From: Epithemia pelagica
Taxonomy: Eukaryota > Protista > Bacillariophyta
DNA length: 64,000 bases
Assembly: GCA_946965045.2 (NCBI GenBank)
Contig: OX337230.1
Span: 4,092,001-4,156,000 of the forward strand
Direction: 5' to 3'
A model generated the notes under the pieces. It was not told the origin of the DNA. It did not search any database and worked only from the letters and a program-made list of their open reading frames with translations. The position numbers and the translations under genes were made by a program. Numbering within the stretch: the stretch's first letter is position 1; each line of letters starts with the position of its first letter. Below, one piece after another: positions 1,836 through 39,241 of the stretch.

Positions 1836-2736
1836 TTCGTTTGGGCTATTCTAATTTTTCTACACTAAAATAAAAATCAAAGTACAGTAATTTTTCGGGC
1901 TTATGTAGAGTGGGGAGTAGGTGGGGGAGGGGTAGGACGACGAGTGAGAAAGGTAGACGAAAACACCACGTATTCTTGTCCATGAGTGGGAATGACGCAC
2001 AGGTCGGATTATGAAATCCACCAATCACGGCAACTTGATTGGCAACAGTCACCAAACTGCAGCCTGTATGGTAGTTTTCGAGTGGTGGGAGATTCCACAC
2101 GTGGTTGTGGTGTGTATCCAAGATTTCCATGGTTCGATGGTTTCCCGCCACCACCAGACAAGATCCCACGGCAACCACTGTACAACGCATTTCTGGCTCG
2201 GAAAGCACCAGATTAGAGTGAGTCCTCCAATAAGAAGACGAGTAAAAAATCACTGTAGCAGCAGTTGGTCTCGTCGTTCTTACTTGGCGCTGTAAAGTCT
2301 AAATACTCCACCGAGTCAAGATTGCCGTGCTTGTTATGGCCTCCCACGACAAAGATGCGGTTGCCAACAACAGCACTGGCACAGCATGTACGTGGGACGT
2401 TCATGGATGGTCTCTCAATGACAGTTTGGTTCGTGGTATCAATAATCTCCACCGAGGATAAGTCATCTCTCCCCCTGTCCTTTCCACCCATTACAACAAT
2501 ATATCGATTGTGCACCGCAACAGCACAACATCTATATCGTCCCGTTGATAATCGACAGTTTAATGTCGTCCAATAACTCTCATGCGTACTGCTTGTTGTA
2601 AAAGATGATTGCAGTAGCAAATCATTGGAATCAATCCGTTCAATACAATCGAAAAATCCTCGACTGTATCCTCCTAGCACGTAGACCCCACCGTTGCACA
2701 CAACAGCGGCATGCTCCTCACGTGTCTTGTTCATGT

Positions 2737-2930
2737 TGTTGAAACTCACACAGCTGCTGTAAAGGCAAACTACGGAATCTTATTTTACTCATCGAATGAG
2801 ACCTTTTTCCTTTCAGATCTCTTCCCTGCCTTACGTTCCACTAGCGTCCAGTTCTCGCCGTCATCCGCTGCCAGCTGTTCAGTCGCATTAACATGCTTCT
2901 TTGCTATCCCGTCAGCGTGATTCCTCAACA
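2737..2930 (-). repeat. 3' LTR of element A
   Basis: Direct repeat of 8675-8868. Confidence 0.97.
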
Positions 2931-5900
2931 CACTCCTTTGTGCCGAGTGGTACGGACTAGTCGGCAGAATATTCATGATGGCATCTCGATGTTGATAGAA
3001 AAGTTGCCCTTGTAAAGGTTTGGTGTAGAAGTCCGCCACCATTTGGTCGGTCGGACAATATTCAATTCGTAAGTCTTTGTTCTGGATACGATCCTTGATA
3101 TAAAAATATCTGATGTTGATGTGTTTCGTACGTTTTGTGCTGGACATGCGTCCATTGTTCTCCAACAGCATCGCGCTTTGGTTGTCTTGGTATACCACGA
3201 CGTCCTTGATCTTCACTCCTTGACTTTTCAGGAAATTGCGAGTCCATACAATCGTTGGCAACACATCATGAGCCCCAATGAGTTCGCTCTCCGTCGAACT
3301 TCTGGCCACTAGTTTTTGTTTGGTTGAATGTGATATAACGCTTCCGCGACCCATGCATAGGTTTGCACCCGTGTGCCCCTTCATATCATTGTGGGTGGCA
3401 TACGATGCGTCAATCCACCACCGTAGCACCCCGTGTTTATTAGCTTCTAGTCGCAGAATCAGGTCCTTTGTGTTTTGTAGATACTTGATGACTCGTATCA
3501 ATTTTCGATAGTCGTCTTCGTCTGGTTTTGATACTCTGGTACATAGAAAGGCGATAGCAGTGCGTATATCAGGGCGTCCCCGATGTGCTAAGTATGCCAA
3601 CTGCATGGTCATACTGTGGAACAGTTCAGCGCGTGTTGCATCCAATGGTTTGCAATTCTCATTGATGAGAAATAGATGTGCCGCTGCTGGAGTCAGTGCT
3701 TTACCAATCATATCTTGTGGAATATCGTCCAGCACAGTGGCCACATAGGGGGTCATATCAACTTGTAATACCCCGGGTTCTGAGAAATCTAGGTACATCC
3801 CCAAGTAATCATGACGCTTCCCTCTGGAGATTGAGAGCTCTCCGAGTTGGCCAAATTCTTTGATGAGTTGGTTGATGATCATGGATACGGTTTCTTCCTT
3901 GACATGGGAGATTTTTAAATCGTCCACGTGCCATGTGATCGTGCACTGGGTCCCGTCAATATTTTTGTTAGCGACACATGTGTCATAGTCGTTTAGGATG
4001 AAGCCCCAATCTTTCAGTACGATAGAGAGTTTTTCCCAAAAGAGTCGTGCTGCTCTAAGCGTTCCGTAAAGCGCTTTTAGCATGTCAACATAAATGACAG
4101 GCTTTCCTTTCTCGTACGTAAGATATGGGCGATAGGCGGCTTCATCCACTTCCAGTAGCAGTTTTGCCATGATACCATCAATTCTCATATGGACGTCGGG
4201 ATCCATGTCGGCTTGCATAAACGCGCCGGGAATATCCACGACCGCCACCTCCCTATGTTCCAATGCATCGATGATTGCCGTTAAGAACACAGCTTCGGTG
4301 GTTACTGTGGGAGAGGCTGCGTCCTCTCGCGGGATATACAAACGCTGCTTACGCCCGTCGGCGCATCCTCGACCCTTGATTTTCCCATTGCGTTTTCGCT
4401 TGAGAAACATAAGGTAGCCGAGTGCGTTTGTGAGTTGATTGCTAGTTAGTGATGTCTTGTGAACACCACGGATCACTCCTCGCTCATGTAGTTGTGTAAT
4501 TTCTTTCTTGACAGCCGCCACTCCTTGATCTCCAAAAATTTTTAATCCCTTGCTCATGGGCATTTGTGGGGTTGCCATGCTGATTTCACCACTGTCGGCG
4601 ACGAATAGCCAACCGTCATGGATGTATCCATCCATTGTTCCTTGTTCTTGCTCATTGAAGTGAAAAGTGGCATTGTTATACCCGAAACGATGTGTATATG
4701 AGCGTTCACGCTGTGGTCGTAGGTTGTACCCACTTTCATGACCATCCTCATGATCTTCTTCTTGACCCATATCTATGGGAATGTCGTTGTCATCAGCAAC
4801 CGTCTCAACACCAGCAACGGTCTCAACATCCTCATTGATATTGTTATCCCTCCCCTGCCGGTCGTTGTTACTTTCGATATCGTCGTTATCCTCATTGGCC
4901 ATCACCCCCAAATCCTCATTTGGCTCCTCCATTGATTCCTCCTCCTCTTCACTCATTTCCTCCGCGACCTCTTCCATCGGCCCCATCAGCCCCATTTCCT
5001 CCACCACTCCTTCGTTTGTACCCATTGCTCTTTCGAGGTCATTGTGTTCGTTGTCCGCTGTTGGTGCCGGATCTGGATTGTCCATGTCCATCTCTTCATC
5101 CACAGGACCAAGTGGCTCATCCGCTAACTCTTCTGCCACGAACTCGGCATCATATCTCAGGTCCTCATCCTGGTCTTGTTCTGGCTCGTAGTCCTCATCA
5201 TCATCTTCATTGAATATTTCATTATCATCGTCCAACAGTAGGATCCTGTTGTCACGGTTTCCAAACGCCAAGCCAGGTTGTGCTGATTGTGCCTCAGCCA
5301 ATTTAATAATTCGATCAATGACTCCTTGCGGCATCGGAACTTTGGTCGCGTGATTGCGATTGATGACCCTTCCACTGGCGAGACTCAGGAAATAGAAGCC
5401 ACCTTGTCGATTGCCAGTTGGACGGAGAGCCAAGGCGCCCACCGTGCGGGCGCTCATTGAGTTGTCATGTTCCTCGTGACATTGTACGTATTCGCCAAAC
5501 TCATAGCGGCAGTGACGATGGTAGTCCAATCTGGATCCCGTCACTAGTTCTTGTGGGCTTATGGTATCGGAAATGCCGCCCTGATGAGGAAAGCTATTCA
5601 GCCAGAAGACGGCCTGTTTCGCCAACTCAATCACCATGATCTTGGGTATGATATCAAACGGTAGCATGTTGTATGTTGCTCTCATCCTTTCTTTGATTGT
5701 TCTGATTCGTCGTTCAATGTCCCCAACGTGTTCATTGCGTGCTGCAGGGTTCAACGCCATTCCAATTGTGGCCAATTGCTGTTCCATATAATCATTCTTG
5801 AATGCGCCATCTGCAAGCAGAATTCTCGGCCGCAGATCAGTTCGTCGATATAAGTTTACAGTCCGTTTGAGGCATTGAAAAACGTGTTCCATGGATGTGC

Positions 5901-7797
5901 TCTCCAAGGCATCGATCGTGGTGAAATAAAGGTGGCGAGAGAGGGTGGTTAGGAACGGGACCCCGTTCACATGCATGATATCCATTGCGATCACGATTTC
6001 ACGGTACTTGGCGTCAATTGCTGGAGGAATGAGGTTGTCGAGTGGGACAGTTGGTGATTTCCGACGTGTTGTCTTGCCCTTGAGTGTGCCGATGTCCGGG
6101 CCATAAATGGCTTCGGCCCTTTTTATGTCTTCTCGTGTGTAGGGGCAATTTGGTAGCATGTTTGTGGACACTATATGAAGGAATTCCTTCGTGGATGGAC
6201 GACCTATGCTTATTTGAAGCTGTCGTGCTCCTCTAGCTCTATCTACATCAGACTGAGAATATTTTGCTTCGTTGTCCTTAACTGTAGTTAGGAAACTATG
6301 CTCATTCTTCTTGGTGTCCATGTAGTAGAGTCCTTGGGTGCTCGGCTTGAACGTGCATTTGACTTTGCCGCTTTTGTCTTGTAATGTAAACTTGTTGCCT
6401 TGTTTGCTGTGATATTCGACTTGATAGTTATTCTTGGCGTTGTGAAAAGAGAGGAGGTTAACCGGTCCATCAGGATCAAACCAAACCACCCCGTACGAGG
6501 GGAGATCTGCAATTTGTGTCAGGACGCGGCTACCGGCGTGGCTGTGGATGGTAATAGGTGTCTTGCTTTTTCTGATGTTTTTAATAAGGTCTTTGTTTGA
6601 AATGATATCAACGGTGGATTGATTATCAAGGAGGATCCATGATCTGGGGATGTTAGCCTGTATAGACGAGGAAAAGGACATAGCGTGAGAGATTGTTTCA
6701 TCCGATTCGGTCACCGTTTGATGTTGCGAACCTTGTTGTGAGCCGTGTTGTTTGTGGTCGGCCGTTCCCGTGTTGAAGGCCACACCAGTGGCATTTTGTT
6801 GTTCTCCGCTGTTTGATCCTGAGTTGCCCTGATACTGGTTCTTGATATTGATGCGGTTGTCGATAATGGCACGGGCATCCGCTAAGGTTGCCGGGTAGTA
6901 GTTCCCACCGTCAAGGAAGGTATTCTGCAGATGCACTTCATAAGATCGATGTCCACAGGTACGTATGAAGCGAATCGCGATACATCGTTCTTGGGCCTCT
7001 GCTTCATCGTCGGGGGTTGGTTTGTTGTCGGTCCGTTTGTTTTTGGTGGCGATTTCAATCAAGAAGTCATGGTCGTACAGTTTGATTCCCATTTCTGTTA
7101 TGAGTTTTACCTTGGAGCGAAAGACTTCATAATAACTCTGCAGTGACTGGTTGTTTTGCCTTTTCAGTCCATAGTATTCTTCTTTAAGTCGATCTCGTGA
7201 TACCGCCGTGTAAACTCGTCCGGAGTCGAAAGTAAACATTGTGGTCTTGATTAATTTGAGCAATGCAATCCCGTCTCTTGCGTCTTGGATTGCCTGGAAT
7301 TCTTTTTTAGCTCGCAGTTTGTCACGGAGGAGCGGGGTACATTGACCCAATAAAACGCTGTAGAAGGACGATCGAAAGCCGTTGTAGAGAATGATTTGTT
7401 CTTCGCGGGCCTTGAACTTGAATTCCCATTCCTTTCCGATGAAGAAGTTATCGGCGTCCTCATCCTTTGGCTTGACAATAGGATCTGGATCGTTGAGCTC
7501 CAATTGCTCGACTGCTTTTTGGAATTCCATGTTGTATTTGCTGTGGTTTGCTCCGACATACCCAACAAGTAGTTCCACGTTCTTCAAATATCGTTTACTT
7601 TGGGGATCTTCAGAATAATCAAAGGTGCAGTCAGCCAAACTTGGCTCCTGCCCTTGAAACTTGTTGCTGCCTTGTCCGCCTCGCCCTCGACCGCCACGGC
7701 CACGTCCTCGGCCACGACCGCCACGTCCGGTTCGATCTTCATTGTTGTTGGTCGATGAGGAGGGAGCCCCATCAGGACTCGGATTCTGAGCACTCAT
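2785..7797 (-). CDS. Gag-Pol polyprotein of copia element A (1670 aa)
   Basis: Protease WILLDNQSTVD; integrase IAMDIMHV / LADGAF / EHVGDIERRIRTIKER; RT VVDIPGAF, KALYGTLRAA, WHVDDLKISH; RNase H WIDASYA, SSTESE, YQDNQSA, KHINIRYF, ADFYTKPLQG. Confidence 0.97.
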   Translation of the reverse strand: MSAQNPSPDGAPSSSTNNNEDRTGRGGRGRGRGRGGRGRGGQGSNKFQGQEPSLADCTFDYSEDPQSKRYLKNVELLVGYVGANHSKYNMEFQKAVEQLELNDPDPIVKPKDEDADNFFIGKEWEFKFKAREEQIILYNGFRSSFYSVLLGQCTPLLRDKLRAKKEFQAIQDARDGIALLKLIKTTMFTFDSGRVYTAVSRDRLKEEYYGLKRQNNQSLQSYYEVFRSKVKLITEMGIKLYDHDFLIEIATKNKRTDNKPTPDDEAEAQERCIAIRFIRTCGHRSYEVHLQNTFLDGGNYYPATLADARAIIDNRINIKNQYQGNSGSNSGEQQNATGVAFNTGTADHKQHGSQQGSQHQTVTESDETISHAMSFSSSIQANIPRSWILLDNQSTVDIISNKDLIKNIRKSKTPITIHSHAGSRVLTQIADLPSYGVVWFDPDGPVNLLSFHNAKNNYQVEYHSKQGNKFTLQDKSGKVKCTFKPSTQGLYYMDTKKNEHSFLTTVKDNEAKYSQSDVDRARGARQLQISIGRPSTKEFLHIVSTNMLPNCPYTREDIKRAEAIYGPDIGTLKGKTTRRKSPTVPLDNLIPPAIDAKYREIVIAMDIMHVNGVPFLTTLSRHLYFTTIDALESTSMEHVFQCLKRTVNLYRRTDLRPRILLADGAFKNDYMEQQLATIGMALNPAARNEHVGDIERRIRTIKERMRATYNMLPFDIIPKIMVIELAKQAVFWLNSFPHQGGISDTISPQELVTGSRLDYHRHCRYEFGEYVQCHEEHDNSMSARTVGALALRPTGNRQGGFYFLSLASGRVINRNHATKVPMPQGVIDRIIKLAEAQSAQPGLAFGNRDNRILLLDDDNEIFNEDDDEDYEPEQDQDEDLRYDAEFVAEELADEPLGPVDEEMDMDNPDPAPTADNEHNDLERAMGTNEGVVEEMGLMGPMEEVAEEMSEEEEESMEEPNEDLGVMANEDNDDIESNNDRQGRDNNINEDVETVAGVETVADDNDIPIDMGQEEDHEDGHESGYNLRPQRERSYTHRFGYNNATFHFNEQEQGTMDGYIHDGWLFVADSGEISMATPQMPMSKGLKIFGDQGVAAVKKEITQLHERGVIRGVHKTSLTSNQLTNALGYLMFLKRKRNGKIKGRGCADGRKQRLYIPREDAASPTVTTEAVFLTAIIDALEHREVAVVDIPGAFMQADMDPDVHMRIDGIMAKLLLEVDEAAYRPYLTYEKGKPVIYVDMLKALYGTLRAARLFWEKLSIVLKDWGFILNDYDTCVANKNIDGTQCTITWHVDDLKISHVKEETVSMIINQLIKEFGQLGELSISRGKRHDYLGMYLDFSEPGVLQVDMTPYVATVLDDIPQDMIGKALTPAAAHLFLINENCKPLDATRAELFHSMTMQLAYLAHRGRPDIRTAIAFLCTRVSKPDEDDYRKLIRVIKYLQNTKDLILRLEANKHGVLRWWIDASYATHNDMKGHTGANLCMGRGSVISHSTKQKLVARSSTESELIGAHDVLPTIVWTRNFLKSQGVKIKDVVVYQDNQSAMLLENNGRMSSTKRTKHINIRYFYIKDRIQNKDLRIEYCPTDQMVADFYTKPLQGQLFYQHRDAIMNILPTSPYHSAQRSVLRNHADGIAKKHVNATEQLAADDGENWTLVERKAGKRSERKKVSFDE

Positions 7798-8636
7798 TAT
7801 TCTTGAGGAGGACGAACGGCCAAGCTTATGTTGTGCCTCTGGCGGCGGAATTCTTCGTTCCTGTTTATGGCGTAGTTCCAGACTCTAATGGTATAGTATA
7901 CCGCTCCGATCCTAATTACGGTCCCGTGCACGTGATAGTGCACTCCTTGTCTTGCGAGCCGACAACTGTTGAGGATTCGTACGTACGATCCGATCCGGAC
8001 AGTTTGGTCTTGAATTAGTTGTGGCTCTTGTGGTTGTGCTTGTGGTGCTGGAGGTGCACGTCGTGCTGGTCTTGGTGCCGGTTGAGGTGCGTGCTGCACT
8101 GGTTGCAATACGGCTGCTGCCCGTTGCTGAGCTTCGATGATTGCTCCGGCAAATTCTGGGTCAAGCACAACAGGTTCCGGAACCGGTGCTGCCTCGTTCA
8201 CTTCGGGGATTGGTACGACTACCACGTCCTCTTCTTGATCGACTTCTTCGTCGGAGTCTTCAACGTCCAATACAGCGACAGGTGGACGACGTTGCTCAGC
8301 GAGAATGGCTGTTGCCAATTCTCTCTGCGGACCTGGTGGACCGTGAAGGTGGATGTGGGTTTCTTCGAGGTATGTCAATAATTCTTCTTGTCGTCGACGG
8401 TAAACAGAACGGGTTCGACTGATGCCACTTGCCAAACGATCTAACTGGTCTGAGAGGTTTTGCCGATGCGCCGCTTGGAGGGCCTCTTGGGCCTCGTTGA
8501 AGGACCGAACACTATCGGCACGCTCCGTCTCGTGCTGTTGTCGCAATTGCTCCAGCGCTTCTTGTTGTTGGTTGTCTATCAGAGCCAAATTGTGAAATAC
8601 CTCGAGTATATCGTTGATGGCTTCAGTTACGTTCAT
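7797..8636 (-). CDS. Extra 5' ORF of element A (279 aa from first ATG): coiled coil, acidic linker, C-terminal KOW/SH3-like beta domain
   Basis: Long open frame between the 5' LTR and gag. First ATG is 8636; the track start at 8687 is a GTG inside the LTR. Its TAA (7799-7797) overlaps the gag ATG (7797-7795). Confidence 0.8.
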   Translation of the reverse strand: MNVTEAINDILEVFHNLALIDNQQQEALEQLRQQHETERADSVRSFNEAQEALQAAHRQNLSDQLDRLASGISRTRSVYRRRQEELLTYLEETHIHLHGPPGPQRELATAILAEQRRPPVAVLDVEDSDEEVDQEEDVVVVPIPEVNEAAPVPEPVVLDPEFAGAIIEAQQRAAAVLQPVQHAPQPAPRPARRAPPAPQAQPQEPQLIQDQTVRIGSYVRILNSCRLARQGVHYHVHGTVIRIGAVYYTIRVWNYAINRNEEFRRQRHNISLAVRPPQE

Positions 8637-8660: not shown

Positions 8661-8674
8661 TTCGATGAGTAAAA
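8661..8674 (-). promoter_or_regulatory. PBS position of element A, complementary to LTR-internal 8721-8734 (putative self-primer site)
   Basis: Plus 8661-8674 TTCGATGAGTAAAA is the exact reverse complement of plus 8721-8734 TTTTACTCATCGAA. It has no TGG start and no GGTTATG motif. Confidence 0.75.
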
Positions 8675-8868
8675 TGTTGAAACTCACACAGCTGCTGTAA
8701 AGGCAAACTACGGAATCTTATTTTACTCATCGAATGAGACCTTTTTCCTTTCAGATCTCTTCCCTGCCTTACGTTCCACTAGCGTCCAGTTCTCGCCGTC
8801 ATCCGCTGCCAGCTGTTCAGTCGCATTAACATGCTTCTTTGCTATCCCGTCAGCGTGATTCCTCAACA
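8675..8868 (-). repeat. 5' LTR of element A
   Basis: Direct repeat of 2737-2930. Confidence 0.97.
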
Positions 8869-9099
8869 CATGTGTGGTCCTTGTCGCCACTGCTGCTTAT
8901 TGGGATCTGCTAAATTTAATACAAGAACGGAATTGACAATTCCTTGGCCTCGTTGACGTCCTCCCAACACGACAACCGTCTGCCCCTTGTTGTTGTTGTG
9001 GTTGGAATCGTTGTCCTGATCGGGATGATTCAGTACGACCGTAGCATGATCGTAACGCCATCCTCCCTCGAGAGGAGGCCAATTGGTTTCATTCCATTG

Positions 9100-9595
9100 C
9101 GCTGTTTCGTCCGGTAGGAAAAGCCCCGACTGCCATGCTTGTTCTTTCAGTGTGGTGGTGGCCATCATTGTTCCGTCGAGCAAAAGTGTCGGATGAGCAA
9201 ATCGCGTATTGTGGTTGAGAATGGAGAGGTTTCTGTACATACAGCACACGATGGAAATGGACCACAACAAACGGACGGCGGACGGACAAAGGCGAACGCT
9301 GGGGGGGGGGGCACAACACGAAACACCCCACGTTCCACCCTAAATCTCAATATATTCTGGGCAGTGCCTCCGGGTACCTCCGCATTTTTTGGGCGATATA
9401 TAAAAATGAGTAATGCCGTCACACTTTTTTCCCTTCTCCGTTTCGGCAAGAGCACAAAACAACAACAACACACCCACCATGGGACGCTTTTATCTTGAGG
9501 ATGACGACCACAATGACACTAGGGTTACGACGAATGGTGGAAGAACTTGGCCCTTTGTGGCACAAGAAGGAGAGGAAGGATCTCTCGTCCCATAT
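9100..9595. repeat. Segmental duplicate of ~14400-15010 (Kelch 5' end, intergenic region and first codons of the torsin-like gene)
   Basis: ATGGGACGCT(T/A)TT(A/G)TCTTGAGGATGACGACCACAATGACACTAGGG at 9478 and 14898. The copy at 9478 is truncated after about 40 codons. Confidence 0.85.
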
Positions 9596-10937
9596 GGTAT
9601 GGACGAATGCACGGGGGAGGCACTCGGATCAGCCCCCACAGGAGACAAACGACGACGAATGGCGGAGCTTGAATTGCGTCGGACATTGACTGGGGCTCTG
9701 CTAAATGAAGGTTGCAGATCGAGGGCTCAGAAAAGAACGAACCACAGTCCAGACAGAAGACCCATTTCAGCAAAAAAACAACCACACACGGCAATTGAGA
9801 GTTAAACAGCAAGGAAGAAAATCCCAGCATCAGCCTGGATCCCCTATACATGGGACGTTGATCTCAGCCCCAAAATGAAACAAAAACAGGTGGAGCACTA
9901 TGGAGAACGAGGCGCAAAAAGGAGTGGCGGGGGGAAACCGTTACAAAAGGTATGAAAGAGGCCCATAAAGAGGCAGCGCATGCCGTGCTTGCGACATCTC
10001 TTTATGGTCTCGTTCATTCCTTTTGCACGGATATGCCTTTACCACAATGGGCCAACACAAAAAGTCATTGATTGAGGGGCGCGCGCAAGTCTCATTCTAG
10101 ATTTGGAATGTGGCTGGATACGGACTGTGGCTCTCGCCCATATGACTATCAGTAACGTGTGCACATTCCAGCGCTCTCGCCGAATGCAGCAATCCCAACC
10201 ACCACACCCTATTCGAGCTATTATATGGGGTGTGGTGTTTGTGATAAATGCCCAGGCGAGGAAACCGGATCAGCTGCAACGGGAAACGACTTTTGGCGGA
10301 GGTTCCATGGACGAGTGACGGAACCAACCAGTTCCAATGGATTCCTCACAACTCATGGAGAAGCATCCGATGCCCGAATAGCAATGGCCGAGTATTTGAT
10401 GGGACAATGCTGGCAATTCATGGATTTGTGAATGGTGCCTTCCCAACGGGCACTCAGAATTGCTCTCAAACTGCCAGAACAAACGTTGTGTGTTGTGCAA
10501 TGAAATGATTCGAGTACAATGAGATGATTCCAGCATCTCATTGTACTGGAATTATTTCATGGCGCAACGCATTGCACAACACAAAGTTGACATTTTCAGG
10601 AGATGGATTCAATCCATTGAAAAATGGTTGTGCAACGAGACGAAACAAGGTCGGCACAGTAGCGCGCGCGAACCCGGAAATACCAGTGCTTTGTTGTGCC
10701 GTATCATCTATGGAGCCCGATGGAGTAACGCCATTTTGTCGGTAGAGGTTCCTTTATCTGTTTTGTTTTCGATTGACCGGTACTCCTACGACCGACAGAC
10801 ACCTCCGTTCTCAAACAAAACCATCCATTTCTCGTGAAATCAGTCGTGCTTCCAGTCCGCACCCATCAGCATGAGCACATCACAGCGGAGCACAGCAAAC
10901 CACCGAATCATAAATTCTGCAGTCAACGTTTGGAACC

Positions 10938-12659: not shown

Positions 12660-12880
12660 GAATGAGAGCATGCATCCGTTTGGAGGTTGCTCACAGAGTT
12701 GACGAAAACACCACGAATTCCTATCCATGAGTGGTAATGACGCACAGGTTGGATTATCATATCCACCAATCACGGCCACTTGATTGGCAACAGTCACCAT
12801 ACTGCAGCCATAATGGCGATTTTCGAGTGGTGGGCGATTCTACACGTGGTTGTGGTTGTGGTTGAGGGGCGTATCCAAGA
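12660..12880 (-). pseudogene. Kelch gene C-terminal fragment
   Basis: MVTVANQVAVIGGYDNPTCASLPLMDRNSWCFRQLCEQPPNG matches the family C-terminus; there is no upstream part. Confidence 0.75.
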
Positions 12881-13297
12881 TTTCCACAAAGATTGTTTTG
12901 TTGGAGAACAAAACGCTTTCTACTATAGAATTTGAAATATAATGATTATTCTCCACACAATTTCGCCATTTTAGGACATGGAGACGCTACATCAGCTCCG
13001 GATGGATCCATGAATCGATGTGGTCTTGCTTGTTCTCGTGACAAATGAGAGGCACAGACGTTTGCCGTAGACTCATGCAAAACTAGCGTAAGGAATGGGC
13101 GCATTGTCCTGGAACGGTTGACTTGTGTTTACTACAAAGCGTTGCGTCCTTTGTTGGAGCTTATGCGAATCCTAGTAGTTACTTCGTCCGAAACCAATCA
13201 CTGCAATGTAGTCGGCGAACGCCCAATTCTATTACAACAACCAACAACCAACACAAGTGTCATCCTTCCGTTTCGCAAGGTCGATTTCATTCCATTG

Positions 13298-14449
13298 CTA
13301 ATTCCATCCGTTTGGAGGTTGCCCACAGAGTCGTTGAAAGCACAACGAATTCTTGTCCATGAGTGGCAGTGTCAAACAGGTAGAATTCTCATATCCACCA
13401 ATAATGGCAACTTGATTGGTAACAGTCACCATTTTGCAGCCTGTACGGCCATTCTCGAGTGATGGGAGGTTCCAAACGCGGTTGCGGTTCGTATCTAATA
13501 CTTCCACGGTTCGACAATGTCCTCCCGCCACCACCAGACAAGATCCCACGGCAACCACTGTACAAGAACATTGTGGCCTGGAAAGCACCAGATCAGAGTG
13601 AGTCGTCCAAGAGGACGAGGAAAAAGTCACTGTAGCAGCAGTTTCCACCTTTGTCTCCTCGTTCTCACTTGGCGGCGCTGTAAAGTTTAAATACTCCACC
13701 GTGCCAAGTATGTCTTGATTGTTATCGCCCCCAACGACAAAAATGCGATGACCAACGACCGCACTGACACACCATCGTCGTGGAACAGCAAGGCTTGGCC
13801 CTGCAGTGACAGTATGGCTCGTCGTATCAATAATCTCCACCGAGGACAAGGTCGCCATGTTCTTTCCACCCATTACAACAATATATCGATTGTGAACCGC
13901 AACAGCACAACATCCATATCGTCCCGTTGACAATCGACAGTTTAATGTCGTCCAATGACTCTCATACGTACTGCTTGTCGTAAAAGATGATTGCAGTAGC
14001 AAATCATTGGCATCGATTCGTTCGATACAATCCATATATTCGTCGTCTATTATACTGTATCCTCCCATTACGTAGACAGCTCCGTTGCACACCACAGCAG
14101 CACGTCCATCACATTTCTTGCTCATGGGTGGCCCTTCGCGCCACTGCTTGTTCGATTCTGCCAAATTTAATACAAGAACGGAATTGACAGGGCCGACAGA
14201 GCCTTGGTCATGTTGACGTCCCCCCAACACGACCACGGTTTGTCTCGCACTATTAATGTGGGTGTCGTTCTCACGGTTCGTATTCGTATGATCGCGAGGA
14301 TGATGATGATGATTCAGTACGACCGTAGCATGCTGGAAACGCCATCCTCCCTCGAGAGGAGGCCAATCGGTTTCATTCCATTGCGCTGTTTCGTCCGGTA
14401 GGAAAAGCCCCGACTGCCATGCTTGTTGTTTCAGTGTGGTGGTGGCCAT
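13298..14449 (-). CDS. Kelch-repeat protein K3 (open frame)
   Basis: Repeated GG-Y/W Kelch units (VYVMGGY, IVVMGGK, IFVVGGD, LVVAGGH, VAIIGGY). Likely start MATTTLKQQAW at 14449. Confidence 0.9.
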   Translation of the reverse strand: MATTTLKQQAWQSGLFLPDETAQWNETDWPPLEGGWRFQHATVVLNHHHHPRDHTNTNRENDTHINSARQTVVVLGGRQHDQGSVGPVNSVLVLNLAESNKQWREGPPMSKKCDGRAAVVCNGAVYVMGGYSIIDDEYMDCIERIDANDLLLQSSFTTSSTYESHWTTLNCRLSTGRYGCCAVAVHNRYIVVMGGKNMATLSSVEIIDTTSHTVTAGPSLAVPRRWCVSAVVGHRIFVVGGDNNQDILGTVEYLNFTAPPSENEETKVETAATVTFSSSSWTTHSDLVLSRPQCSCTVVAVGSCLVVAGGHCRTVEVLDTNRNRVWNLPSLENGRTGCKMVTVTNQVAIIGGYENSTCLTLPLMDKNSLCFQRLCGQPPNGWN

Positions 14450-14897
14450 TGTTCCTTCCAACAGGAAACCGTCGAGCAAAAGTGTTGGATGAGCAAATCG
14501 CGTGCAAGCTTTTTTAGTGTGTGGTTGAGAACGGAGGTCTCGGTTCCTCGTAGGAGTACAATCGAACAAAGCACGATGGAAATGGACCGAATGGGCTCCA
14601 CAAAAAATGATGCGGCACAAAACAAAAAGTACTGGTATTTCCGGGTTCAACACGTACGGCGGACGGACAATGACGAACGCTGGGGGGGGCGAAACACGAA
14701 ACACACCCTTTTTTGCGTTCCACGTTCCACCCTAAATCCCAACATCTTCTGTGGGCGGTTCCTCTGACTGAGTGCCTCCGGGCGCCTCTCACGTTTTATT
14801 ACAAGTATTATAGTGGCGATGGCGAGATTTTTTGAGCTGTCACACTTTTTTGCCGTTTCGGCAAGAGCACAACAACAACAGAACACAACCCAGCACC

Positions 14898-17018
14898 ATG
14901 GGACGCTATTGTCTTGAGGATGACGACCACAATGACACTAGGGTTACGACGAATGGTGGAAGAAATTGGACCTTTGTGGCACAAGAAGGAGAGGAAGGAT
15001 CTCTCGTCCCCTACAACGATTCCACAAGGTCGTCGTTGTCTTGGTCGAATCCTAATGGGTCCATGCCACAACACTACCATCCGCAACAACACCAACAACG
15101 ACCCATTGTCTATGTTGTTTCCAGTCGACACCACGACTGGTATGATGATCCAAACACAGAGGACGACCATGATTCTTCCCATCATGTTCGTCGTCGTCGT
15201 GGTTGGTGTGGTTGGTGCGGCTGGGTCGGAGTGACACTGTTCTCGCTCTTGATGGTTTCCTGCTGGCACTATGGTCCTCCAGCTCCTCCACCACCCACAA
15301 CAACAACTTCGTCGTCTTCCTGGACGATGACGACGTGCTCCGCAAGTCTGGAGGACACTGCAACCACAACAAGTTCGGATGCTTGTCGTGCCGAACGACT
15401 GTATGACAACGACAACGACAATCATGACAAGGACAAGGAGCCCCTGTCGTGGACTGAATATCGACAGTATCACACGGCGGCCTTGCTGCAATCCTTGCGG
15501 GCCACGGTGTGGGATACCACGTGGCATGTCGTGTCGTGGACGGGCATTCAAGTCTGGTACGATGTGCAATCGATCCGTCAGGCCCTGACGCAATTTTTGC
15601 ATCAAACCTGGGATGCGGTTCGATATGGCACTTGCTGTTCGCTTCACACAGCCCTATCGTCGTCATCGACACCTACAGTCGCCGACTTGTATCCCTACTT
15701 GCTGGAGCATTTCCCTTCCGCTACCGCGCAACCCCATGCCATGTTGCCCTTTGTTCAAGCATTGGAAACCCATTTTGGTGGGGTTTCACCACCACAACAA
15801 TCACAATCGCCACAATCACAATCACCACTGGTACTTTGGGCGTCGCAAATGACTCCTGGATTGGCCGTCCCCGAATGGATCGAGTCGACCCTGGAATTTT
15901 TGCTGCCCCACTGTCCCCGTTCCAAACGACCGTGGGCCATCCTGTCGGTCCCCTTGGTGTCGCCAATGTCGTCGTCGACCAGCCGTACTTTGTTCCACAT
16001 TCCTCCAAATGACGACGACGAACAACAACAACAACAAGAACAACGAGCCTTGGAATGGATCCAAACCTTGCGTCGCACCGTCGAACCATGGCAGGGGCGG
16101 GGTGGAATTGTCCTGGTCCAACAGGCCGATCGTTTGCCCACGGCCGTCCTCGAATGGTTGCTCCTCCTGGGCAGCAGTGGATCGTCGTCTTCATCATTTG
16201 AGAACGACAAGTGGACATTGCCACCCACTACTACCAGCTCCACCACTAGCACGCAACAGCAACAACAACAACGTCTCTTTGCCTCGACCATTGTGATTCT
16301 CACATCGGAAACCATTGGTCGATCCAGCATGGCACGACACTTGAGACTGCAACCCTCCATTCGGGACATTTCACGATCGTCTTTGGTGTTGGACATTCAA
16401 CACGAAGTGGCCACGCATTTTCTAGCCAAACAATCCAAGAACAACCATAACAACAACCACAAACAGAACAACAAGCAGAACCACCATTTTCCCGTGGAAC
16501 ACTTGGTGGTCTTGCCCTTTTGGTATGTGACGCGTTCCACGGTACAAGACGACGCCCTTGATGTGGCCCTGCAACGCTTGACCGATACACTGCAGTCCTC
16601 TGGTAAATTGTCGTCATCCTCTTCCTTGGCGGTCACGCATACCTTGCGTCAGGAATGGACCAGTCCCCAACGCATGGAATGGATTCAATTAACCGTCCTG
16701 GTACCAACCTCCACCACGACAATAGACACTACCGACTCATCCTCGTCCTCCTCCTCGACAACGACGGCCGTGTCATTGGAAATTTCCACTCAAGGCATGA
16801 CGCCCCTCCTGGATCACGTGCGTGTCGTGGAACCCAAAGTACGGCACTGTCTCGAGTCATCATCGTCATCGTCGTCCAAGAATAAGCACCCAACCAACGA
16901 CCCTTCGTACACGCTCGACTATGATCCCGCGACGCAACAAGTCGTGTTGCTCCAGCAAGACTGCTTTCAACCCGAAACGACCTTGGAATGTCCACCCATT
17001 TGTTCCTTTTACTTTTAG
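14898..17018 (+). CDS. Membrane-anchored protein with degenerate torsin/AAA+-like domain
   Basis: TM segment WCGWVGVTLFSLLMVSCW. Segments QPHAMLPFVQAL, PLVLWAS, IVLVQQADRLP and FASTIVILTSETIG resemble torsin GQH, PLVLSFHG, Walker B and IFIFLSN blocks, but without catalytic residues. Confidence 0.5.
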   Translation: MGRYCLEDDDHNDTRVTTNGGRNWTFVAQEGEEGSLVPYNDSTRSSLSWSNPNGSMPQHYHPQQHQQRPIVYVVSSRHHDWYDDPNTEDDHDSSHHVRRRRGWCGWCGWVGVTLFSLLMVSCWHYGPPAPPPPTTTTSSSSWTMTTCSASLEDTATTTSSDACRAERLYDNDNDNHDKDKEPLSWTEYRQYHTAALLQSLRATVWDTTWHVVSWTGIQVWYDVQSIRQALTQFLHQTWDAVRYGTCCSLHTALSSSSTPTVADLYPYLLEHFPSATAQPHAMLPFVQALETHFGGVSPPQQSQSPQSQSPLVLWASQMTPGLAVPEWIESTLEFLLPHCPRSKRPWAILSVPLVSPMSSSTSRTLFHIPPNDDDEQQQQQEQRALEWIQTLRRTVEPWQGRGGIVLVQQADRLPTAVLEWLLLLGSSGSSSSSFENDKWTLPPTTTSSTTSTQQQQQQRLFASTIVILTSETIGRSSMARHLRLQPSIRDISRSSLVLDIQHEVATHFLAKQSKNNHNNNHKQNNKQNHHFPVEHLVVLPFWYVTRSTVQDDALDVALQRLTDTLQSSGKLSSSSSLAVTHTLRQEWTSPQRMEWIQLTVLVPTSTTTIDTTDSSSSSSSTTTAVSLEISTQGMTPLLDHVRVVEPKVRHCLESSSSSSSKNKHPTNDPSYTLDYDPATQQVVLLQQDCFQPETTLECPPICSFYF

Positions 17019-30193: not shown

Positions 30194-30925
30194 ACTTAAT
30201 GTAAACAGATATCTAGGTGTTGGTAAAGACACGTGTTAGATATAGGTGAGGTAGTCAATATAGCTCGGGTAGCCAACCTACTGCAGTGAAACGACGATGG
30301 GGCCCTCACCTTCGAATCAGCAACTAGGTCGACTCTCTTTCACAAACAGTTTGGTTACAAACTTTTGGTTTATAAAAAGAGTGAGCTTATTCTAAGATGA
30401 AAAGTGATTTTGGAGCAGGTTTGATCTCCTCGATCCTCTAGGTATGGAACTTGTTCTATTTGTTCCATAGAGCAGTTCTTTTTGTTCTGTGCACTAGTGG
30501 GAGATCTCACCTCTCCTGTTGTATCTTGTTTTGGATCTTTACTCGATGGACTTACCTTTGACACTCTTCAGGTGGCCGGATGGCCTGCCTGAGATCCATT
30601 TGTTTTCTCAATATTGAGAGGAAGATTCGGTATCCGGTGGCTCGCCCGACATGCAAATATATACGGCTGTATAGTGGGCTCGCGGTCTGGCAAGTTTTTA
30701 TGTAAATAATATAGTAGGGCGTAAGTCACGTAAAGTTCCTTAGTTTTGGCGAGCAGCGCGATCAGTACTCTAAAGCAGCTGCTCGATGCGTTGAGGTTCA
30801 ATTGACGTGCGTTGAGGTGCAACGCCTGCTTCTGATCGGCATGTGGCACGTCTGACCGCACGTCACGCATATAGCTAGAGGAAATAGTCTAATGTCTAGA
30901 GAGTCGAGAGCGGTATTCTATAACT
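30194..30925 (-). repeat. 3' LTR of element B
   Basis: Direct repeat of 38510-39241 (offset 8316). Confidence 0.95.
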
Positions 30926-30977
30926 CTCCCTCTCATGGAGTGATTGGTGGAGAATCATGACGTGGTATGATGTCAGC

Positions 30978-32870
30978 TTACCAACCTTGATTTAATTTGC
31001 GGCAGCGCTCAAAGAGCTCTCGATTTTGGCACTTGGTGAGATAGTCTGCCTTTTGATCATTGGTGCCTACCATACTGACCTTTACTCCTCCGGGATGATC
31101 ACCGACATGTTCCCAGAAGAAATGTAGGTAAGTATTAAAATGTTTTGTCCGGGGTGTAAGGCGTTGCTTGGTAGCTAGGTGGAAGGCTCCACTGTTGTCT
31201 TCAAAAACTTCAGAGAATATAGTTGGCTTTTCAAATGGGAGTTCTAGGTTCTCTAGAAGCTCTTCAATGACTCGTCTTGTTGCAATAACACTACGCATTG
31301 CTTGAGACAAAGCATGATATTCCGCTTGAAGTGTGCTTAGAGCTACTGAAGATTGAAGTTGCGATCTCCAAATTAGAGGACATCCACAGAAGGTTAGGAT
31401 GTATCCCGTTCGTGACTTGGCACTAACCGGGTTATCCTGTGGTTCACGACCATGGAGTCCCGCAAAATCAGCGTCTACATAACAATCTAGCTTGAAATCT
31501 TTAGTTGGAGTGAAGATTGTACCTTTGTCCTTGGTTCTTGATAGATAACGAACAATGGTCTTGATGGCTGTTGCATGTGACTTTTTAGGTGCTGAACTGA
31601 ATCTAGCGACTTGACTAACTGCGAAGGCTATATCAGGTCTGGTATTCGTGGATAAATAGAGTAGCATTCCGACTATGGAGCTATAATGCCAGCTTTCTTT
31701 CATGGGCTCACCATCGGGATCGCTGCCGAGACCTAGCTGAGTTGCTGGAGTCCAATTCGGATTGCAGTCGTGTAGTCCCGTGGCATTTATTATCTTGGCA
31801 ATTAACCCCTTCTGGGTCATAGTAATAGACTTATTCTCATTTCGAATAAAGTTGATGCCCAAATAGTCGGTGAAATTGCCTTCTTTCTTAAGTGATAGGC
31901 CTTTCTTCTGTAGTTGTTCGATTAAATCATCAATAAGTTTCATATCAGGGGCACAAACGCCACAGTCGTCAACCCATAGAAAAATGATGATGTTGGACTT
32001 GTAAAGAAGACATTCGTCATGCTTACTTGATTTGAAGCCGTCTTCCTTAAGCGCTTGTACTAGATGGATATACCACAATCTAGGTGCAGAAGACAGGCCA
32101 TATAGACTTTTGATGAGTCTTAGGCAGGTCGTTCCGGGCTTACTAGATCGAAATCCTCTAGGTAGATGAATCCATACAGGTTCATCTAAGGTAGCCTGTA
32201 CAAATGCGTTGTTGAAATCGATACACGCAAGTTCCCAACCCAAGATTAAACTAAGGGTGAGCACAATACGGATAGTACTCCAGTGAACCACTGGACTATA
32301 GTTCTCTTGTTCCGTTTCTTGTAGGTCTCCTCTAACACAATATCGAGCCTTATGCTTGATAATATCTCCGTCTGGAGATCGCTTGCGTTTGAATACCCAT
32401 GTCCCAGGTAAAATTCGTGTATTAGCCTGGGATTGAGGGACTTCTTCCCAAGTTCCTTTCTCCTCTAGTTCGGTTATTTCCTTGCTAGCTGCCGCTTTCC
32501 ATTTCTCTATGTCTGTATCTCGCATAGCCTCATCGTAAGAGAGGGTGTCGGGATCAGAGAGAGAAGCTTTGTGAACTGTTAAAAGGTCACTAGGCTCATG
32601 AGATGGTGGCATTAGAGAAGGGAGGTTTGCTAGATTGCCTTCTTCAACTAAGCGGGTAGGTCGTTTAATAGTCCTAGCAGATCTCCTAGTTGGAAGGATC
32701 GTCGGTTGGACTGCACGTGGAGGCGGTCGCGGTGGTAATCTAGCTGGAGAAGGAGAAGGGTTGTGAAGAGGGGACTCCCTCTGAGACGGCGACTCTCGAA
32801 GAAATGGTAACCTTGTGGGGTGACAGATGGGGAGAAGGCGAACGAGGGGTACTTGGAGCTGTAGATTCAA
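30978..32870 (-). CDS. RT-RNase H part of element B pol (frame-shifted from the integrase part)
   Basis: KARYCVRGD, IDFNNAFVQA, KSLYGL, FLWVDD, YVDADFAG, STLQAEY, FEDNSGA, TKHF, ADYLTK. Confidence 0.92.
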   Translation of the reverse strand: MNLQLQVPLVRLLPICHPTRLPFLRESPSQRESPLHNPSPSPARLPPRPPPRAVQPTILPTRRSARTIKRPTRLVEEGNLANLPSLMPPSHEPSDLLTVHKASLSDPDTLSYDEAMRDTDIEKWKAAASKEITELEEKGTWEEVPQSQANTRILPGTWVFKRKRSPDGDIIKHKARYCVRGDLQETEQENYSPVVHWSTIRIVLTLSLILGWELACIDFNNAFVQATLDEPVWIHLPRGFRSSKPGTTCLRLIKSLYGLSSAPRLWYIHLVQALKEDGFKSSKHDECLLYKSNIIIFLWVDDCGVCAPDMKLIDDLIEQLQKKGLSLKKEGNFTDYLGINFIRNENKSITMTQKGLIAKIINATGLHDCNPNWTPATQLGLGSDPDGEPMKESWHYSSIVGMLLYLSTNTRPDIAFAVSQVARFSSAPKKSHATAIKTIVRYLSRTKDKGTIFTPTKDFKLDCYVDADFAGLHGREPQDNPVSAKSRTGYILTFCGCPLIWRSQLQSSVALSTLQAEYHALSQAMRSVIATRRVIEELLENLELPFEKPTIFSEVFEDNSGAFHLATKQRLTPRTKHFNTYLHFFWEHVGDHPGGVKVSMVGTNDQKADYLTKCQNRELFERCRKLNQGW

Positions 32871-34728
32871 CTCCTGATGATACGGACACCTGTCTTTGAG
32901 GTGTCTGGTTAGTTGTCTCCCTCTGAGGAGGTGACTCCAACGATGTGGTCAATGGAGTTGGAGTGGGATCCTCACTGGGAGTTGGTAAAGAAGCGGAGAG
33001 TGGCACTGGGAGTGGACGTGTGTTAGGTGTAGATGATGACGTCAACGGAAGATATGGTTGGCGAGTAGCAATTCGTTGTGCGACATCTGATTGACGTCGA
33101 AGATACGTATTTTGGGTAGCTTCATCAATACTAGTAGGGGAGTCTAGATCGTCCGTTTCGGATGAATCATCAGTGATATATTGATATGCAGAATCTCCGA
33201 ACAGGCGATACCAAGGTTCGGGTGCAAAGTCCGGAAGCTGGTCGACAGACATGGCAATAGTGCTGAACCAATCGTCGAACACTACATGGAACTGGGGCGT
33301 AATATAGCCAGTTTGAGGATTTAAGACTAATGGAACAGTACTGGCATGTCGCGTACTTAACCCCATAAGTTGGCAGCGAATAGATTTTGGCTGCCAGCGG
33401 GGTAGCTTCTTCCCGTCTGCAATGGTTTTGTGCAGAACATAGACCGGACAGCCCCACACGTGGAGATCATGAAATTTTTGTTGTTCCCATCGGACACGTG
33501 TGAAAACATCATGGGGGCTTATACCAGTCTCAGTATTGGGTACATGGTTGTGTAAGAAAACGGCATGTGAAACGGCCATGGGCCAGAGCGCCGGATCAGC
33601 CAATTCTGGCCACTGTATGGCAGAGTGTAACATCATGGTGCGTGCAATCGACATAATTGTTTGTATTGCCCTTTCAGCTATTCCGGCATGATGATGTGCC
33701 CCGACTCCTGCGAACCGCAAAATTTGAGCAAAGTTCTCAAGCGATTGGGAGTAGGATTTTGAGGTGAAAGCAGCTCCGTTGTCCGTTAGGTATTTGAGAG
33801 GAACTACACCCACTTCTCTACAAAATAGTTCAAAGGATCCTTTAACACTAAGCGTTTCATGAGTGTTAAGGTGTGATTGAAATCCTATCCATGTATACCC
33901 CGAGGCGTGATCGACAAAGATCGCGCCGCCCACATAAAGGTTGTCAACTTTTGACTTCCCCCGAGAGTCAAATCTTCGTCCTTTTGTGGAGCACACAAAA
34001 TGATCTACAGAGATACATTGTCCAGGATGGAGGTTGCCATCTTTGGTGACTCCTCGTCGATCCTTGACAATGGTTGTTGTCGAACCGGGTTCGGTGCGAC
34101 GACGTTGTTTCCCAAATTGGCATGCTGCGCATAATGGTAAGTCTTGCAAAAGAGATGCAGCTTGTGAGTGTAAGCGACGAGTCTTTTCTGTTGTTGCAAG
34201 GATACCAGTGCGCATCAAGAACTGTACCTTGCGAAAGTTAAGATGTCCAAGTCTGTAATGCCATTTGAGTAATTCCTTTTGAGGAGCGGTAAGATTTTCA
34301 TTGTGTTGTGATACTTCATTCACTGTTGTGTTGAGAGCTACCGAGCCAGTCATCATGTTCTGCTTGTCGTACCCAAACGACATGGGCAGATTGTTGCTGG
34401 GATTCACCATGACGGTGACTTCTCGGCGGGATTCATCTCCTGGAATACCGGTTAGGGTAAGTGTGTAACCGTCTTGAATTATTTTCTCGCCGAAGTATGT
34501 TTGAAGTAACGATTGCGTCGACAAAAGTCTAACCGATGTTTTTGGTACTAGGAACGCAGGGAGTTTGAGCGATCGGGGCATACCATTGGTGTCCAGGATC
34601 GTCCAAACAACTGTTCCACGGGCAGTAGCTTTCATCCGGTTGGCGATGCCCTTTACTTGAAGACTTGGCAAAGAGCGAATCGGTACTTGAATCGGTTGAC
34701 ATGGTAGTTGGGGTGGTGTCCGAACCAT
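32740..34728 (-). CDS. C-terminal half of protease plus integrase of element B
   Basis: VKGIA..GTVVW..D.NG..LVPKTSVRLLST; WHYRLGHLNF..CAACQFGK; ISVDHF; LTDNGAAF; GIAERAIQT; GKKLPRW. Confidence 0.92.
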   Translation of the reverse strand: MVRTPPQLPCQPIQVPIRSLPSLQVKGIANRMKATARGTVVWTILDTNGMPRSLKLPAFLVPKTSVRLLSTQSLLQTYFGEKIIQDGYTLTLTGIPGDESRREVTVMVNPSNNLPMSFGYDKQNMMTGSVALNTTVNEVSQHNENLTAPQKELLKWHYRLGHLNFRKVQFLMRTGILATTEKTRRLHSQAASLLQDLPLCAACQFGKQRRRTEPGSTTTIVKDRRGVTKDGNLHPGQCISVDHFVCSTKGRRFDSRGKSKVDNLYVGGAIFVDHASGYTWIGFQSHLNTHETLSVKGSFELFCREVGVVPLKYLTDNGAAFTSKSYSQSLENFAQILRFAGVGAHHHAGIAERAIQTIMSIARTMMLHSAIQWPELADPALWPMAVSHAVFLHNHVPNTETGISPHDVFTRVRWEQQKFHDLHVWGCPVYVLHKTIADGKKLPRWQPKSIRCQLMGLSTRHASTVPLVLNPQTGYITPQFHVVFDDWFSTIAMSVDQLPDFAPEPWYRLFGDSAYQYITDDSSETDDLDSPTSIDEATQNTYLRRQSDVAQRIATRQPYLPLTSSSTPNTRPLPVPLSASLPTPSEDPTPTPLTTSLESPPQRETTNQTPQRQVSVSSGVESTAPSTPRSPSPHLSPHKVTISSRVAVSEGVPSSQPFSFSS

Positions 34729-38090: not shown

Positions 38091-38509
38091 GGTGTTGGAA
38101 GCAACAATCAGCCGCTTTTGGGAAGAACGAGACGCGTCGGTTTGCTGGGCAGAGCCAGGGAGAGGTGCGGTCTGTTGCTGGGGTTCTTGCTGGGTGTTTG
38201 CAAGATCAGGTGGTACACTGAGTGGAGGCTCAGTGGGGTCAGTCCGATTCGGGCCAGGAGTAGTGTCAGACTCGTCGACACTCTCTGCTGTTACGAGTTC
38301 GAAACTGCCAGCGCCACTAGAGGTAGGAGAGTCTTGGTCTTCCTCCGTTGTGGCTACGGGGTGGATGCCTTGCTAGGGATGTCCACTCCTTGCGCGCGTA
38401 TAGATGCCGTAGTAAGAGGTGAACCTTATAGAGTTCTCCCTCTTGGTAATATAATAGTCGATCGATCAGGAAACGTCTTGTTTACCTGCCTTACTTGGGC
38501 TCAGCAACC

Positions 38510-39241
38510 ACTTAATGTAAACAGATATCTAGGTGTTGGTAAAGACACGTGTTAGATATAGGTGAGGTAGTCAATATAGCTCGGGTAGCCAACCTACTGC
38601 AGTGAAACGACGATGGGGCCCTCACCTTCGAATCAGCAACTAGGTCGACTCTCTTTCACAAACAGTTTGGTTACAAACTTTTGGTTTATAAAAAGAGTGA
38701 GCTTATTCTAAGATGAAAAGTGATTTTGGAGCAGGTTTGATCTCCTCGATCCTCTAGGTATGGAACTTGTTCTATTTGTTCCATAGAGCAGTTCTTTTTG
38801 TTCTGTGCACTAGTGGGAGATCTCACCTCTCCTGTTGTATCTTGTTTTGGATCTTTACTCGATGGACTTACCTTTGACACTCTTCAGGTGGCCGGATGGC
38901 CTGCCTGAGATCCATTTGTTTTCTCAATATTGAGAGGAAGATTCGGTATCCGGTGGCTCGCCCGACATGCAAATATATACGGCTGTATAGTGGGCTCGCG
39001 GTCTGGCAAGTTTTTATGTAAATAATATAGTAGGGCGTAAGTCACGTAAAGTTCCTTAGTTTTGGCGAGCAGCGCGATCAGTACTCTAAAGCAGCTGCTC
39101 GATGCGTTGAGGTTCAATTGACGTGCGTTGAGGTGCAACGCCTGCTTCTGATCGGCATGTGGCACGTCTGACCGCACGTCACGCATATAGCTAGAGGAAA
39201 TAGTCTAATGTCTAGAGAGTCGAGAGCGGTATTCTATAACT
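38510..39241 (-). repeat. 5' LTR of element B
   Basis: Direct repeat of 30194-30925. Confidence 0.95.

Follow-up and report, generated by a model that had tools for sequence, protein, structure and literature searches.

A diatom Ty1/copia retrotransposon lineage carrying the sequence signature of Tf1-like self-priming

We analyzed a 64,000-nucleotide stretch of the Epithemia pelagica genome (contig OX337230.1, positions 4,092,001 to 4,156,000; hereafter the window), the minus strand of which carries an intact and very young Ty1/copia-type LTR retrotransposon of 6.1 kb. The 14 nucleotides directly following its 5′ LTR are the perfect complement of a 14-mer inside the same LTR, placed where the element's own transcript is predicted to begin. 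The best explanation that we can offer, at a probability of roughly 0.8, is that the element primes its minus-strand DNA with its own RNA, in the manner of the fission yeast element Tf1. From the observed pairing potential of these two segments, and from its position, conservation and covariation, we infer the transcription start site, an RNase H cut and the priming step itself. A preliminary description of this DNA had proposed a copia element with Tf1-like self-priming geometry in place of a tRNA primer-binding site (PBS), and this proposal has gained support: 12 of 13 sampled families and 56 of 80 metagenomic contigs share this geometry, with sequences that differ and compensate perfectly.

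The features of the element are collected in Table 1. It was previously described as young and intact, which agrees with its identical 194-nt LTRs, two intact ORFs and 5-bp ACATG duplication. Both LTRs start with TGTTGAGG and end in TTCAACA, and the hallmarks expected of a copia-type element were found, namely TG...CA LTR ends, a 5-bp target duplication and a polypurine tract before the 3′ LTR. The junction between this tract and the 3′ LTR, AAAGGAGTG followed by TGTTG, is kept among relatives. A repeat search of the window returned an identical pair of 196 nt (2737-2932 and 8675-8870). We rejected 196 nt as the LTR length, as the two surplus identical bases, TG, belong to the end of the duplication ACATG, and both a second copy of the family and an uninterrupted paralogue of the target give 194 nt. 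The second copy (L002) lies on another contig of the same genome, shares 96% identity with the window element, is flanked by the 5-bp duplication TGTAC and has a 5′ LTR that also begins with TGTTGAGG. A third duplication sequence, ATCGA, flanks the relative L042. The host flanks of the window element, joined through a single ACATG, align without gaps to an uninterrupted paralogue at ~14.0-14.3 kb of the window, which encodes a Kelch-repeat protein. Thus, the window element is a genuine, recent insertion into a copy of a Kelch-repeat gene. Four Kelch-repeat paralogues are found in the 64-kb window (~1900-2736 plus 8869-9600, ~12700-15000, ~55100-56200 and ~58400-59500), one of which is interrupted by the retrotransposon.

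Table 1 Features of the self-priming candidate element in window coordinates.
Feature	Position	Strand	Description
Target-site duplication ACATG, upstream copy	8869..8873	-	Joined flanks colinear with uninterrupted Kelch paralogue
5′ LTR, TGTTG...CAACA	8675..8868	-	194 nt; 100% match to 3′ LTR; edges set by second copy L002 and target duplication
TCA of initiator-like motif TCAH(+1)W	8735..8737	-	Directly 5′ of primer; predicted +1 at 8734
Predicted self-primer TTCGATGAGTAAAA, first 14 nt of predicted transcript (start of R)	8721..8734	-	Perfect complement of PBS
AATAAG, poly(A)-signal-like hexamer	8717..8722	-	Overlaps primer 3′ end; putative function
46-nt loop, rest of R and U5	8675..8720	-	Inner hairpin in minimum free energy (MFE) fold
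Primer-binding site TTTTACTCATCGAA	8661..8674	-	Offset 0 from LTR end
Extra upstream ORF	7797..8636	-	279 aa, intact; coiled-coil-like N-terminus and conserved C-terminal domain of ~70 aa
Gag-PR-INT-RT-RH polyprotein ORF	2785..7797	-	1670 aa, intact; N-terminus homologous to that of single-ORF relatives
Retropepsin-like protease region	6163..6690	-	Weak fold match to XMRV and HIV proteases (E 2.8e-3)
Integrase, catalytic core and SH3-like C-terminal domain	5218..6180	-	AlphaFold model vs retroviral integrases, Foldseek probability 1.00, E ~1e-9
Copia-type reverse transcriptase (Pfam RVT_2)	3721..4395	-	E 2.4e-10, residues 1135-1359, above curated cut-off
Polypurine tract AAAGGAG and TG	2931..2939	-	Directly 5′ of 3′ LTR
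3′ LTR	2737..2930	-	194 nt
Primer 14-mer copy in 3′ LTR (start of 3′ R)	2783..2796	-	Contig C3:4094783-4094796
Target-site duplication ACATG, downstream copy	2732..2736	-	5 bp

The central observation of the preliminary description, a perfect 14-nt complementarity between the start of the internal region and the LTR, was reproduced exactly: TTTTACTCATCGAA (8674-8661) is the reverse complement of TTCGATGAGTAAAA (8734-8721), with 46 nt between them (8720-8675). Neither TGG nor GGTTATG, as expected of a tRNA-type PBS, follows the LTR, as was also noted at the outset. The pairing had been said to stop at 14 bp. This holds on the outer side, where A8735 and A8660 are unpaired, but on the inner side U8720 can pair with A8675, the last base of the LTR, and does so in the MFE fold; this inner pair is not conserved among relatives. 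In 20,000 shuffles of the LTR the longest match anchored at the same position was 11 nt, and none of 5,000 shuffles in a second run reached 14 nt. Across the 60.5-Mb genome, the exact 14-mer was found solely in the four LTRs of the two copies of this family, and its complement solely at the PBS of the window element, the PBS of L002 having lost one T, which leaves 13 bp. The predicted 5′ leader (8735-8655) has an MFE fold of -27 kcal/mol (z = -5.4) that holds the 14-bp duplex. Hexamers comparable to the AATAAG at the 3′ end of the primer (AATAAG, GATAAG or TATAAA) are present in close families.

To relate the window element to its relatives, we picked loci from public assemblies by protein homology, not by structure, delimited their LTRs by BLAST of upstream against downstream sequence, and then compared the post-LTR sequence with the LTR. 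The Pol proteins of the ten relatives in the alignment are 41-59% identical to that of the window element. In 12 of 13 families, the window included, a perfect PBS of 14-17 nt begins at offset 0 from an LTR ending in ...CAACA; ten families have a 14-nt match, one has 15 nt and one 17 nt, and the loops span 46-104 nt. None of 5,000 shuffles was as good in any family to which this control was applied. The primers themselves differ between families at a mean of 7 of 14 positions in pairwise comparison, and this includes sister families in the same genome. Counted over the first 11 families, the stems comprise 154 pairs, all of them Watson-Crick and none G:U, and 13 of the 14 positions covary. L042, which was added after this count, also has a perfect 14-nt match. 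RNAalifold, run on ten leaders, returned exactly the same 14 pairs, 13 of them with double changes. The comparison of relatives for compensatory changes, suggested beforehand as a check, therefore came out in favor of the proposal: the primer sequence differs and the pairing is kept, in 12 of 13 families and with covariation at 13 of 14 positions.

The one exception is a copy from Mayamaea (L035), in which the first 7 nt of the expected PBS are followed by sequence unrelated to that of the other families, while its LTR has a CA-preceded 14-mer of the usual type. The mismatches in L035 (7 nt left) and in L002 (13 bp left) look like damage after insertion, and we read L035 as a probably rearranged copy rather than a counter-example. 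Two further copies differ between their LTRs. The 5′ LTR of L034 (L034:3083-3266) is without the primer stretch, and the L034 PBS still matches the primer in its 3′ LTR (L034:9034-9291). The 3′ LTR of L031 carries a T-to-C change within the primer, and its 5′ LTR and PBS still match. Relatives from the window's own genome (L004-L019) share primer 14-mers with L031-L033, which come from ENA assembly ERZ21939226. That assembly is probably of the same species as the window genome or of a very close one, so that between these two sources the families are independent and the organisms may not be.

To survey environmental DNA, 80 metagenomic contigs were scanned for perfect, CA-anchored stems of at least 12 nt with loops of 30-160 nt. 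The hairpin was found in 56 of them (60 records, 48 distinct primers), with a PBS of 14 nt in 48 of the 60 records, an LTR end of CAACA in 54 of 60 and loops of 52-153 nt; these hairpins were selected for perfect stems and hence show prevalence and diversity, not independent covariation. Contigs without the signature are mostly short or partial, and in others the junction is split across contig ends. Three contigs that start near the primer (L046, L049 and L050) were considered as possible transcripts and rejected, since each continues past the 3′ LTR into flanking DNA and lacks a poly(A) tail, as expected of DNA. No transcript-like contigs were found in the metagenomic set; the three sequencing runs that carry the element are all genomic DNA assemblies, with contigs of up to 509 kb and loose ends that match the flanks of the second copy, and none is recorded as RNA. 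Two contigs have unusual arrangements. In L049 (L049:5250-5310), the U3 holds a 12-nt copy of most of the PBS (CGCAAACGATTA) ~25 nt upstream of the primer, and its predicted start site consequently lies between inverted repeats within the LTR. L064:1-10344 is a tandem array of two elements that share an LTR, with a period of 5626 nt and a primer-PBS match of 12/14.

We also made a prospective prediction within the window's genome. From 3′ LTRs alone (L018, L021-L023, L029 and L030), the 5′ junction was predicted to read CAACA followed by TATTTTAAAAAGAA. This 19-mer occurs exactly 12 times in the genome, compared with 0 occurrences of the controls. For L018, L021, L023 and L029, a match is found on the same contig and strand, ~3.6-5.5 kb past the 5′ edge of the locus and about one element length from the 3′ LTR, and the nearest matches for L030 and L022 are ~6.7 kb and ~11.7 kb away, respectively. 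At the level of sequence, these matches confirm the predicted trait in further families of this genome.

A TCATT motif was previously reported at 8737-8733 and is indeed there. The preliminary description placed the predicted +1 at 8735, and this has to be moved by one base. Kadono et al. proposed the diatom initiator-like motif as TCAH(+1)W, with CACA for -2 to +2 in their ca1 example (PMC4686930). As this example sets +1 on the base after TCA, the predicted +1 of the window element is 8734, the first base of the 14-mer itself. The primer has a CA immediately on its 5′ side in 11 of 12 families and in 52 of the 60 metagenomic records, and a TCA in 45 of these 60 records. The motif is short and common and thus weak when taken alone; its weight comes from CA or TCA staying fixed at the boundary of the duplex while the primer changes, which fits a start site at this position.

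These observations suggest the following model. Transcription would start at or beside 8734, just past the conserved (C)TCA initiator-like motif. The resulting RNA would fold back with its first 14 nt over the 46-nt loop, made of the rest of R and U5, and these 14 nt would pair with the PBS abutting the LTR. The element's RNase H would then cut past nucleotide 14, between 8721 and 8720, and the freed 3′-OH, paired to the base beside the terminal CA, would be extended through U5 and R to yield a strong-stop DNA with the correct LTR end. Plus-strand strong-stop synthesis would copy the still-attached RNA primer, so that the PBS would be rewritten from the primer in each cycle. Such rewriting would explain the strictness of the Watson-Crick pairs, the length of 14 nt in most families and the different sequences in sister families. 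Counting against the model, the R left after removal of the primer would be short, at most ~30 nt.

The same complementarity could instead be used in trans, with a second genomic RNA, co-packaged with the first, supplying its 5′ end as the primer, or with a short promoter-proximal transcript of the LTR in this role. Such priming would likewise be encoded by the element and independent of tRNA, and all of the covariation fits cis and trans equally, sequence being unable to separate the two. We nevertheless think it unlikely: loop length is restricted (46-153 nt) and the MFE fold is that of the fold-back duplex, which favors an intramolecular hairpin as in Tf1 (PMC7175516).

Improbable, and a little more so, is that the LTR-PBS stem serves as a structural RNA, in packaging, dimerization, control of leader translation or suppression of promoter-proximal poly(A) addition, with something else as the primer. 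Leader stems with packaging, dimerization, translation or poly(A)-suppression roles exist in retroelements, and in the window the AATAAG hexamer overlaps the stem. However, the 3′ arm starts at the first base past the terminal CA in nearly every family, which is a requirement of a primer site and not of a generic stem, and the complete lack of G:U among the 154 pairs fits copying better than selection on RNA structure. There is also no alternative PBS, TGG being absent and the PBS not being conserved between families.

That a host RNA (a tRNA, a tRNA half or another) complementary to TTTTACTCATCGAA serves as the primer, with the LTR match as an incidental feature, is a very remote prospect. 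Like a tRNA T-loop, the 14-mer starts with TTCGA, and the list of tRNAs used for comparison consisted of 63 scored candidates only. Yet between sister families an average of 7 of the 14 PBS positions differ, each PBS matching its own LTR, while host tRNAs are conserved; since about half of the PBS positions change between sister families, a tRNA primer is nearly excluded. Genomic matches with at most one mismatch occur at the control frequency, with none in the 63 listed tRNA genes or in an organelle-like contig, and no TGG follows the LTR. The earlier suggestion to scan host tRNAs for complementarity has thus been followed up for these 63 candidates, none of which matches the PBS at ≤1 mismatch. 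Chance complementarity or an assembly artefact can be dismissed for practical purposes, given that no shuffle reached the observed length, that 65 stems were observed in the metagenomic contigs against 1-4 in block shuffles, and that the feature recurs in two copies in the genome, in independent assemblies and in metagenomes.

The coding region places this predicted self-primer in a copia context. More distant relatives have a single long ORF, in some cases with a zf-CCHC domain, and the start of that ORF is homologous to the first ~380 residues of the long ORF in the window element. On this basis, we assign the long ORF as Gag-Pol and the 279-aa ORF as an extra gene. Pfam detected RVT_2 as the sole domain of the polyprotein, with no integrase or protease, and a sequence-profile search of the PDB with the polyprotein gave no match. 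Weak detection of Pfam domains is expected of a divergent lineage. As sequence profiles had missed the integrase and the protease, the gene order was settled by fold. Residues 540-860 of the long ORF, modelled from an 11-sequence alignment, resemble retroviral integrases, and residues ~370-545 gave a weak match to retropepsins. The invariant LLDNQSTVD (residues 389-397) stands at the expected active site of the protease, with no D[ST]G, and RNase H motifs were located at residues ~1460-1565 by alignment only. As modelled, the integrase lies upstream of the reverse transcriptase, which is the Ty1/copia gene order. The gypsy order PR-RT-RH-INT and a gypsy-type reverse transcriptase were not found, the integrase preceding an RVT_2 reverse transcriptase. 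The element is thus best explained as one that would work like Tf1 and yet lies outside the Tf1/sushi clade of Ty3/gypsy chromoviruses. Its named protein homologues are from diatoms, Mayamaea (Mayamaea pseudoterrestris) and Nitzschia sp., and it most likely belongs to a diatom-specific Ty1/copia clade.

The extra ORF marks a subgroup of the lineage. Between the PBS and Gag-Pol, the window element and four relatives (L031:3262-4008, L032:3330-4001, L033:3303-3995 and L034:3328-3999) carry an ORF of 223-279 aa, with a coiled-coil-like N-terminus and a conserved C-terminal block of ~70 aa of the pattern IPIGTRVWVLN...IWNP...EEHRRHR. The 279-aa protein has no match in Pfam or the Atlas. In the window, its stop codon overlaps the Gag-Pol ATG as TAATG, and across the subgroup the stop lies within a few bases of this ATG, a closeness that suggests termination-reinitiation. 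More distant relatives are without the extra ORF, and their polyprotein begins ~20-30 nt past the PBS.

A second, canonical copia element is present in the window at 30194-39241 on the minus strand. Pfam readily found its gag_pre-integrs, rve and RVT_2 domains, and its coding region is split into three ORFs. Its LTRs are identical and 732 nt long, have the ends AGT...AGT and not TG...CA, and are flanked by the target duplication GGAGA. The site following its 5′ LTR, GGTTGCTGAGCCCAAG, differs from the PBS of the self-priming candidate, and its anchored match to its own LTR is 4 nt long. The complement of GGTTGCTGAGCCCAAG has ~37 occurrences in the genome at ≤1 mismatch, compared to 21 for controls, and none of these is among the 63 listed tRNA loci.

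Taking the families together, we put forward a wider proposal, tentatively and at distinctly less than even odds. A diatom-specific copia clade, represented by dozens of families in environmental DNA and several genomes, may have swapped tRNA priming for a 14-nt self-primer that begins at the transcription start, with an origin independent of those in Tf1/sushi and in the plant TAR lineage. In each family the primer and PBS would drift together as a family-specific pair, through recopying of the PBS in every cycle, leaving a fixed-length Watson-Crick tag that marks the start site of that family.

Experimental proof of self-priming is confined to the gypsy-type Tf1 group, and for copia elements the case consists of predictions made from plant sequences. 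With its clean covariation, a diatom clade that is large, young and apparently active would provide a second copia setting, possibly an independent one, for this mechanism. If correct, self-priming would explain why PBS finders based on tRNAs fail on these elements, and would give a base-precise prediction of the transcription start for each family. Diatom retrotransposons contribute to genome change and are activated by stress (PMC2806351), and their mode of priming is relevant to this process. A full-text literature search combining self-priming with diatom or stramenopile found no relevant report; one candidate (bioRxiv 2022.10.17.512609) was set aside because its "self-priming" concerns the biogenesis of siRNA and has no bearing on retrotransposon priming. 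The PBS, tRNA primers and self-priming are all absent from the two main papers on the CoDi elements of diatoms (Maumus et al. 2009, PMC2806351; Llorens et al. 2009, PMC2774666). The type of mechanism is already known, and what appears new, and is well supported by the sequence comparisons, is a diatom copia lineage with the self-priming signature.

The closest functional parallel is with the Tf1/sushi group. In Tf1, the PBS is bound by the first 11 nt of the element's own RNA, which RNase H cleaves between nucleotides 11 and 12 (PMC7175516). Self-priming is established for Tf1 and Tf2 and has been proposed for Tj1, Tcn1 and the sushi group, all of them gypsy-type (PMC7175516; PMC4600332). As in Tf1 and Tf2 of Schizosaccharomyces pombe, Tj1 of S. 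japonicus and the Tf1/sushi elements, the PBS of the window element lies directly past the 5′ LTR and is complementary to the predicted start of its own transcript. It further shares with this group the fold-back over R-U5, a primer 3′ end that abuts the end of the LTR and the absence of a tRNA PBS (PMC7175516, PMC4600332). Unlike Tf1, it has the Ty1/copia order, with the integrase before an RVT_2-type reverse transcriptase, a primer of 14 rather than 11 nt and a short loop of 46 nt. The start site and RNase H cut of Tf1 were demonstrated experimentally, whereas both are predicted for the window element.

Among copia elements, the nearest comparison is the plant TAR lineage (Houba, Osr-1), for which the passage on TAR in Neumann et al. 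2019 (PMC6317226), citing Capy 2005, predicts self-priming from sequence. The tentative suggestion in the preliminary description that self-priming had not been shown for a copia lineage therefore overstates the novelty, in view of this prediction. Both lineages belong to the copia superfamily, and the TAR prediction, as given in that passage, is that 10 nt or more, beginning 0-5 bp past the 5′ LTR, are complementary to a region of the LTR. The hosts of TAR are land plants, in contrast to the diatoms here, and the passage on TAR (PMC6317226) makes no mention of a length fixed at 14 nt, of a position next to an initiator or of covariation from family to family. The fungal GalEa copia elements resemble the window element in having no tRNA-type PBS, and bear a conserved structure, the Conserved Hairpin Site, at the PBS position. 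Their authors found no complement in the LTR and could not fit the Tf1 model (PMC5445492), whereas the LTR complement is perfect in 12 of 13 sampled families, the window element among them. Finally, the CoDi elements of Phaeodactylum and Thalassiosira are diatom-specific, divergent Ty1/copia elements with short TG...CA LTRs and recent activity (PMC2806351; PMC2774666), and the window element has in common with them its short TG...CA LTRs and its diatom-derived homologues (Mayamaea, Nitzschia).
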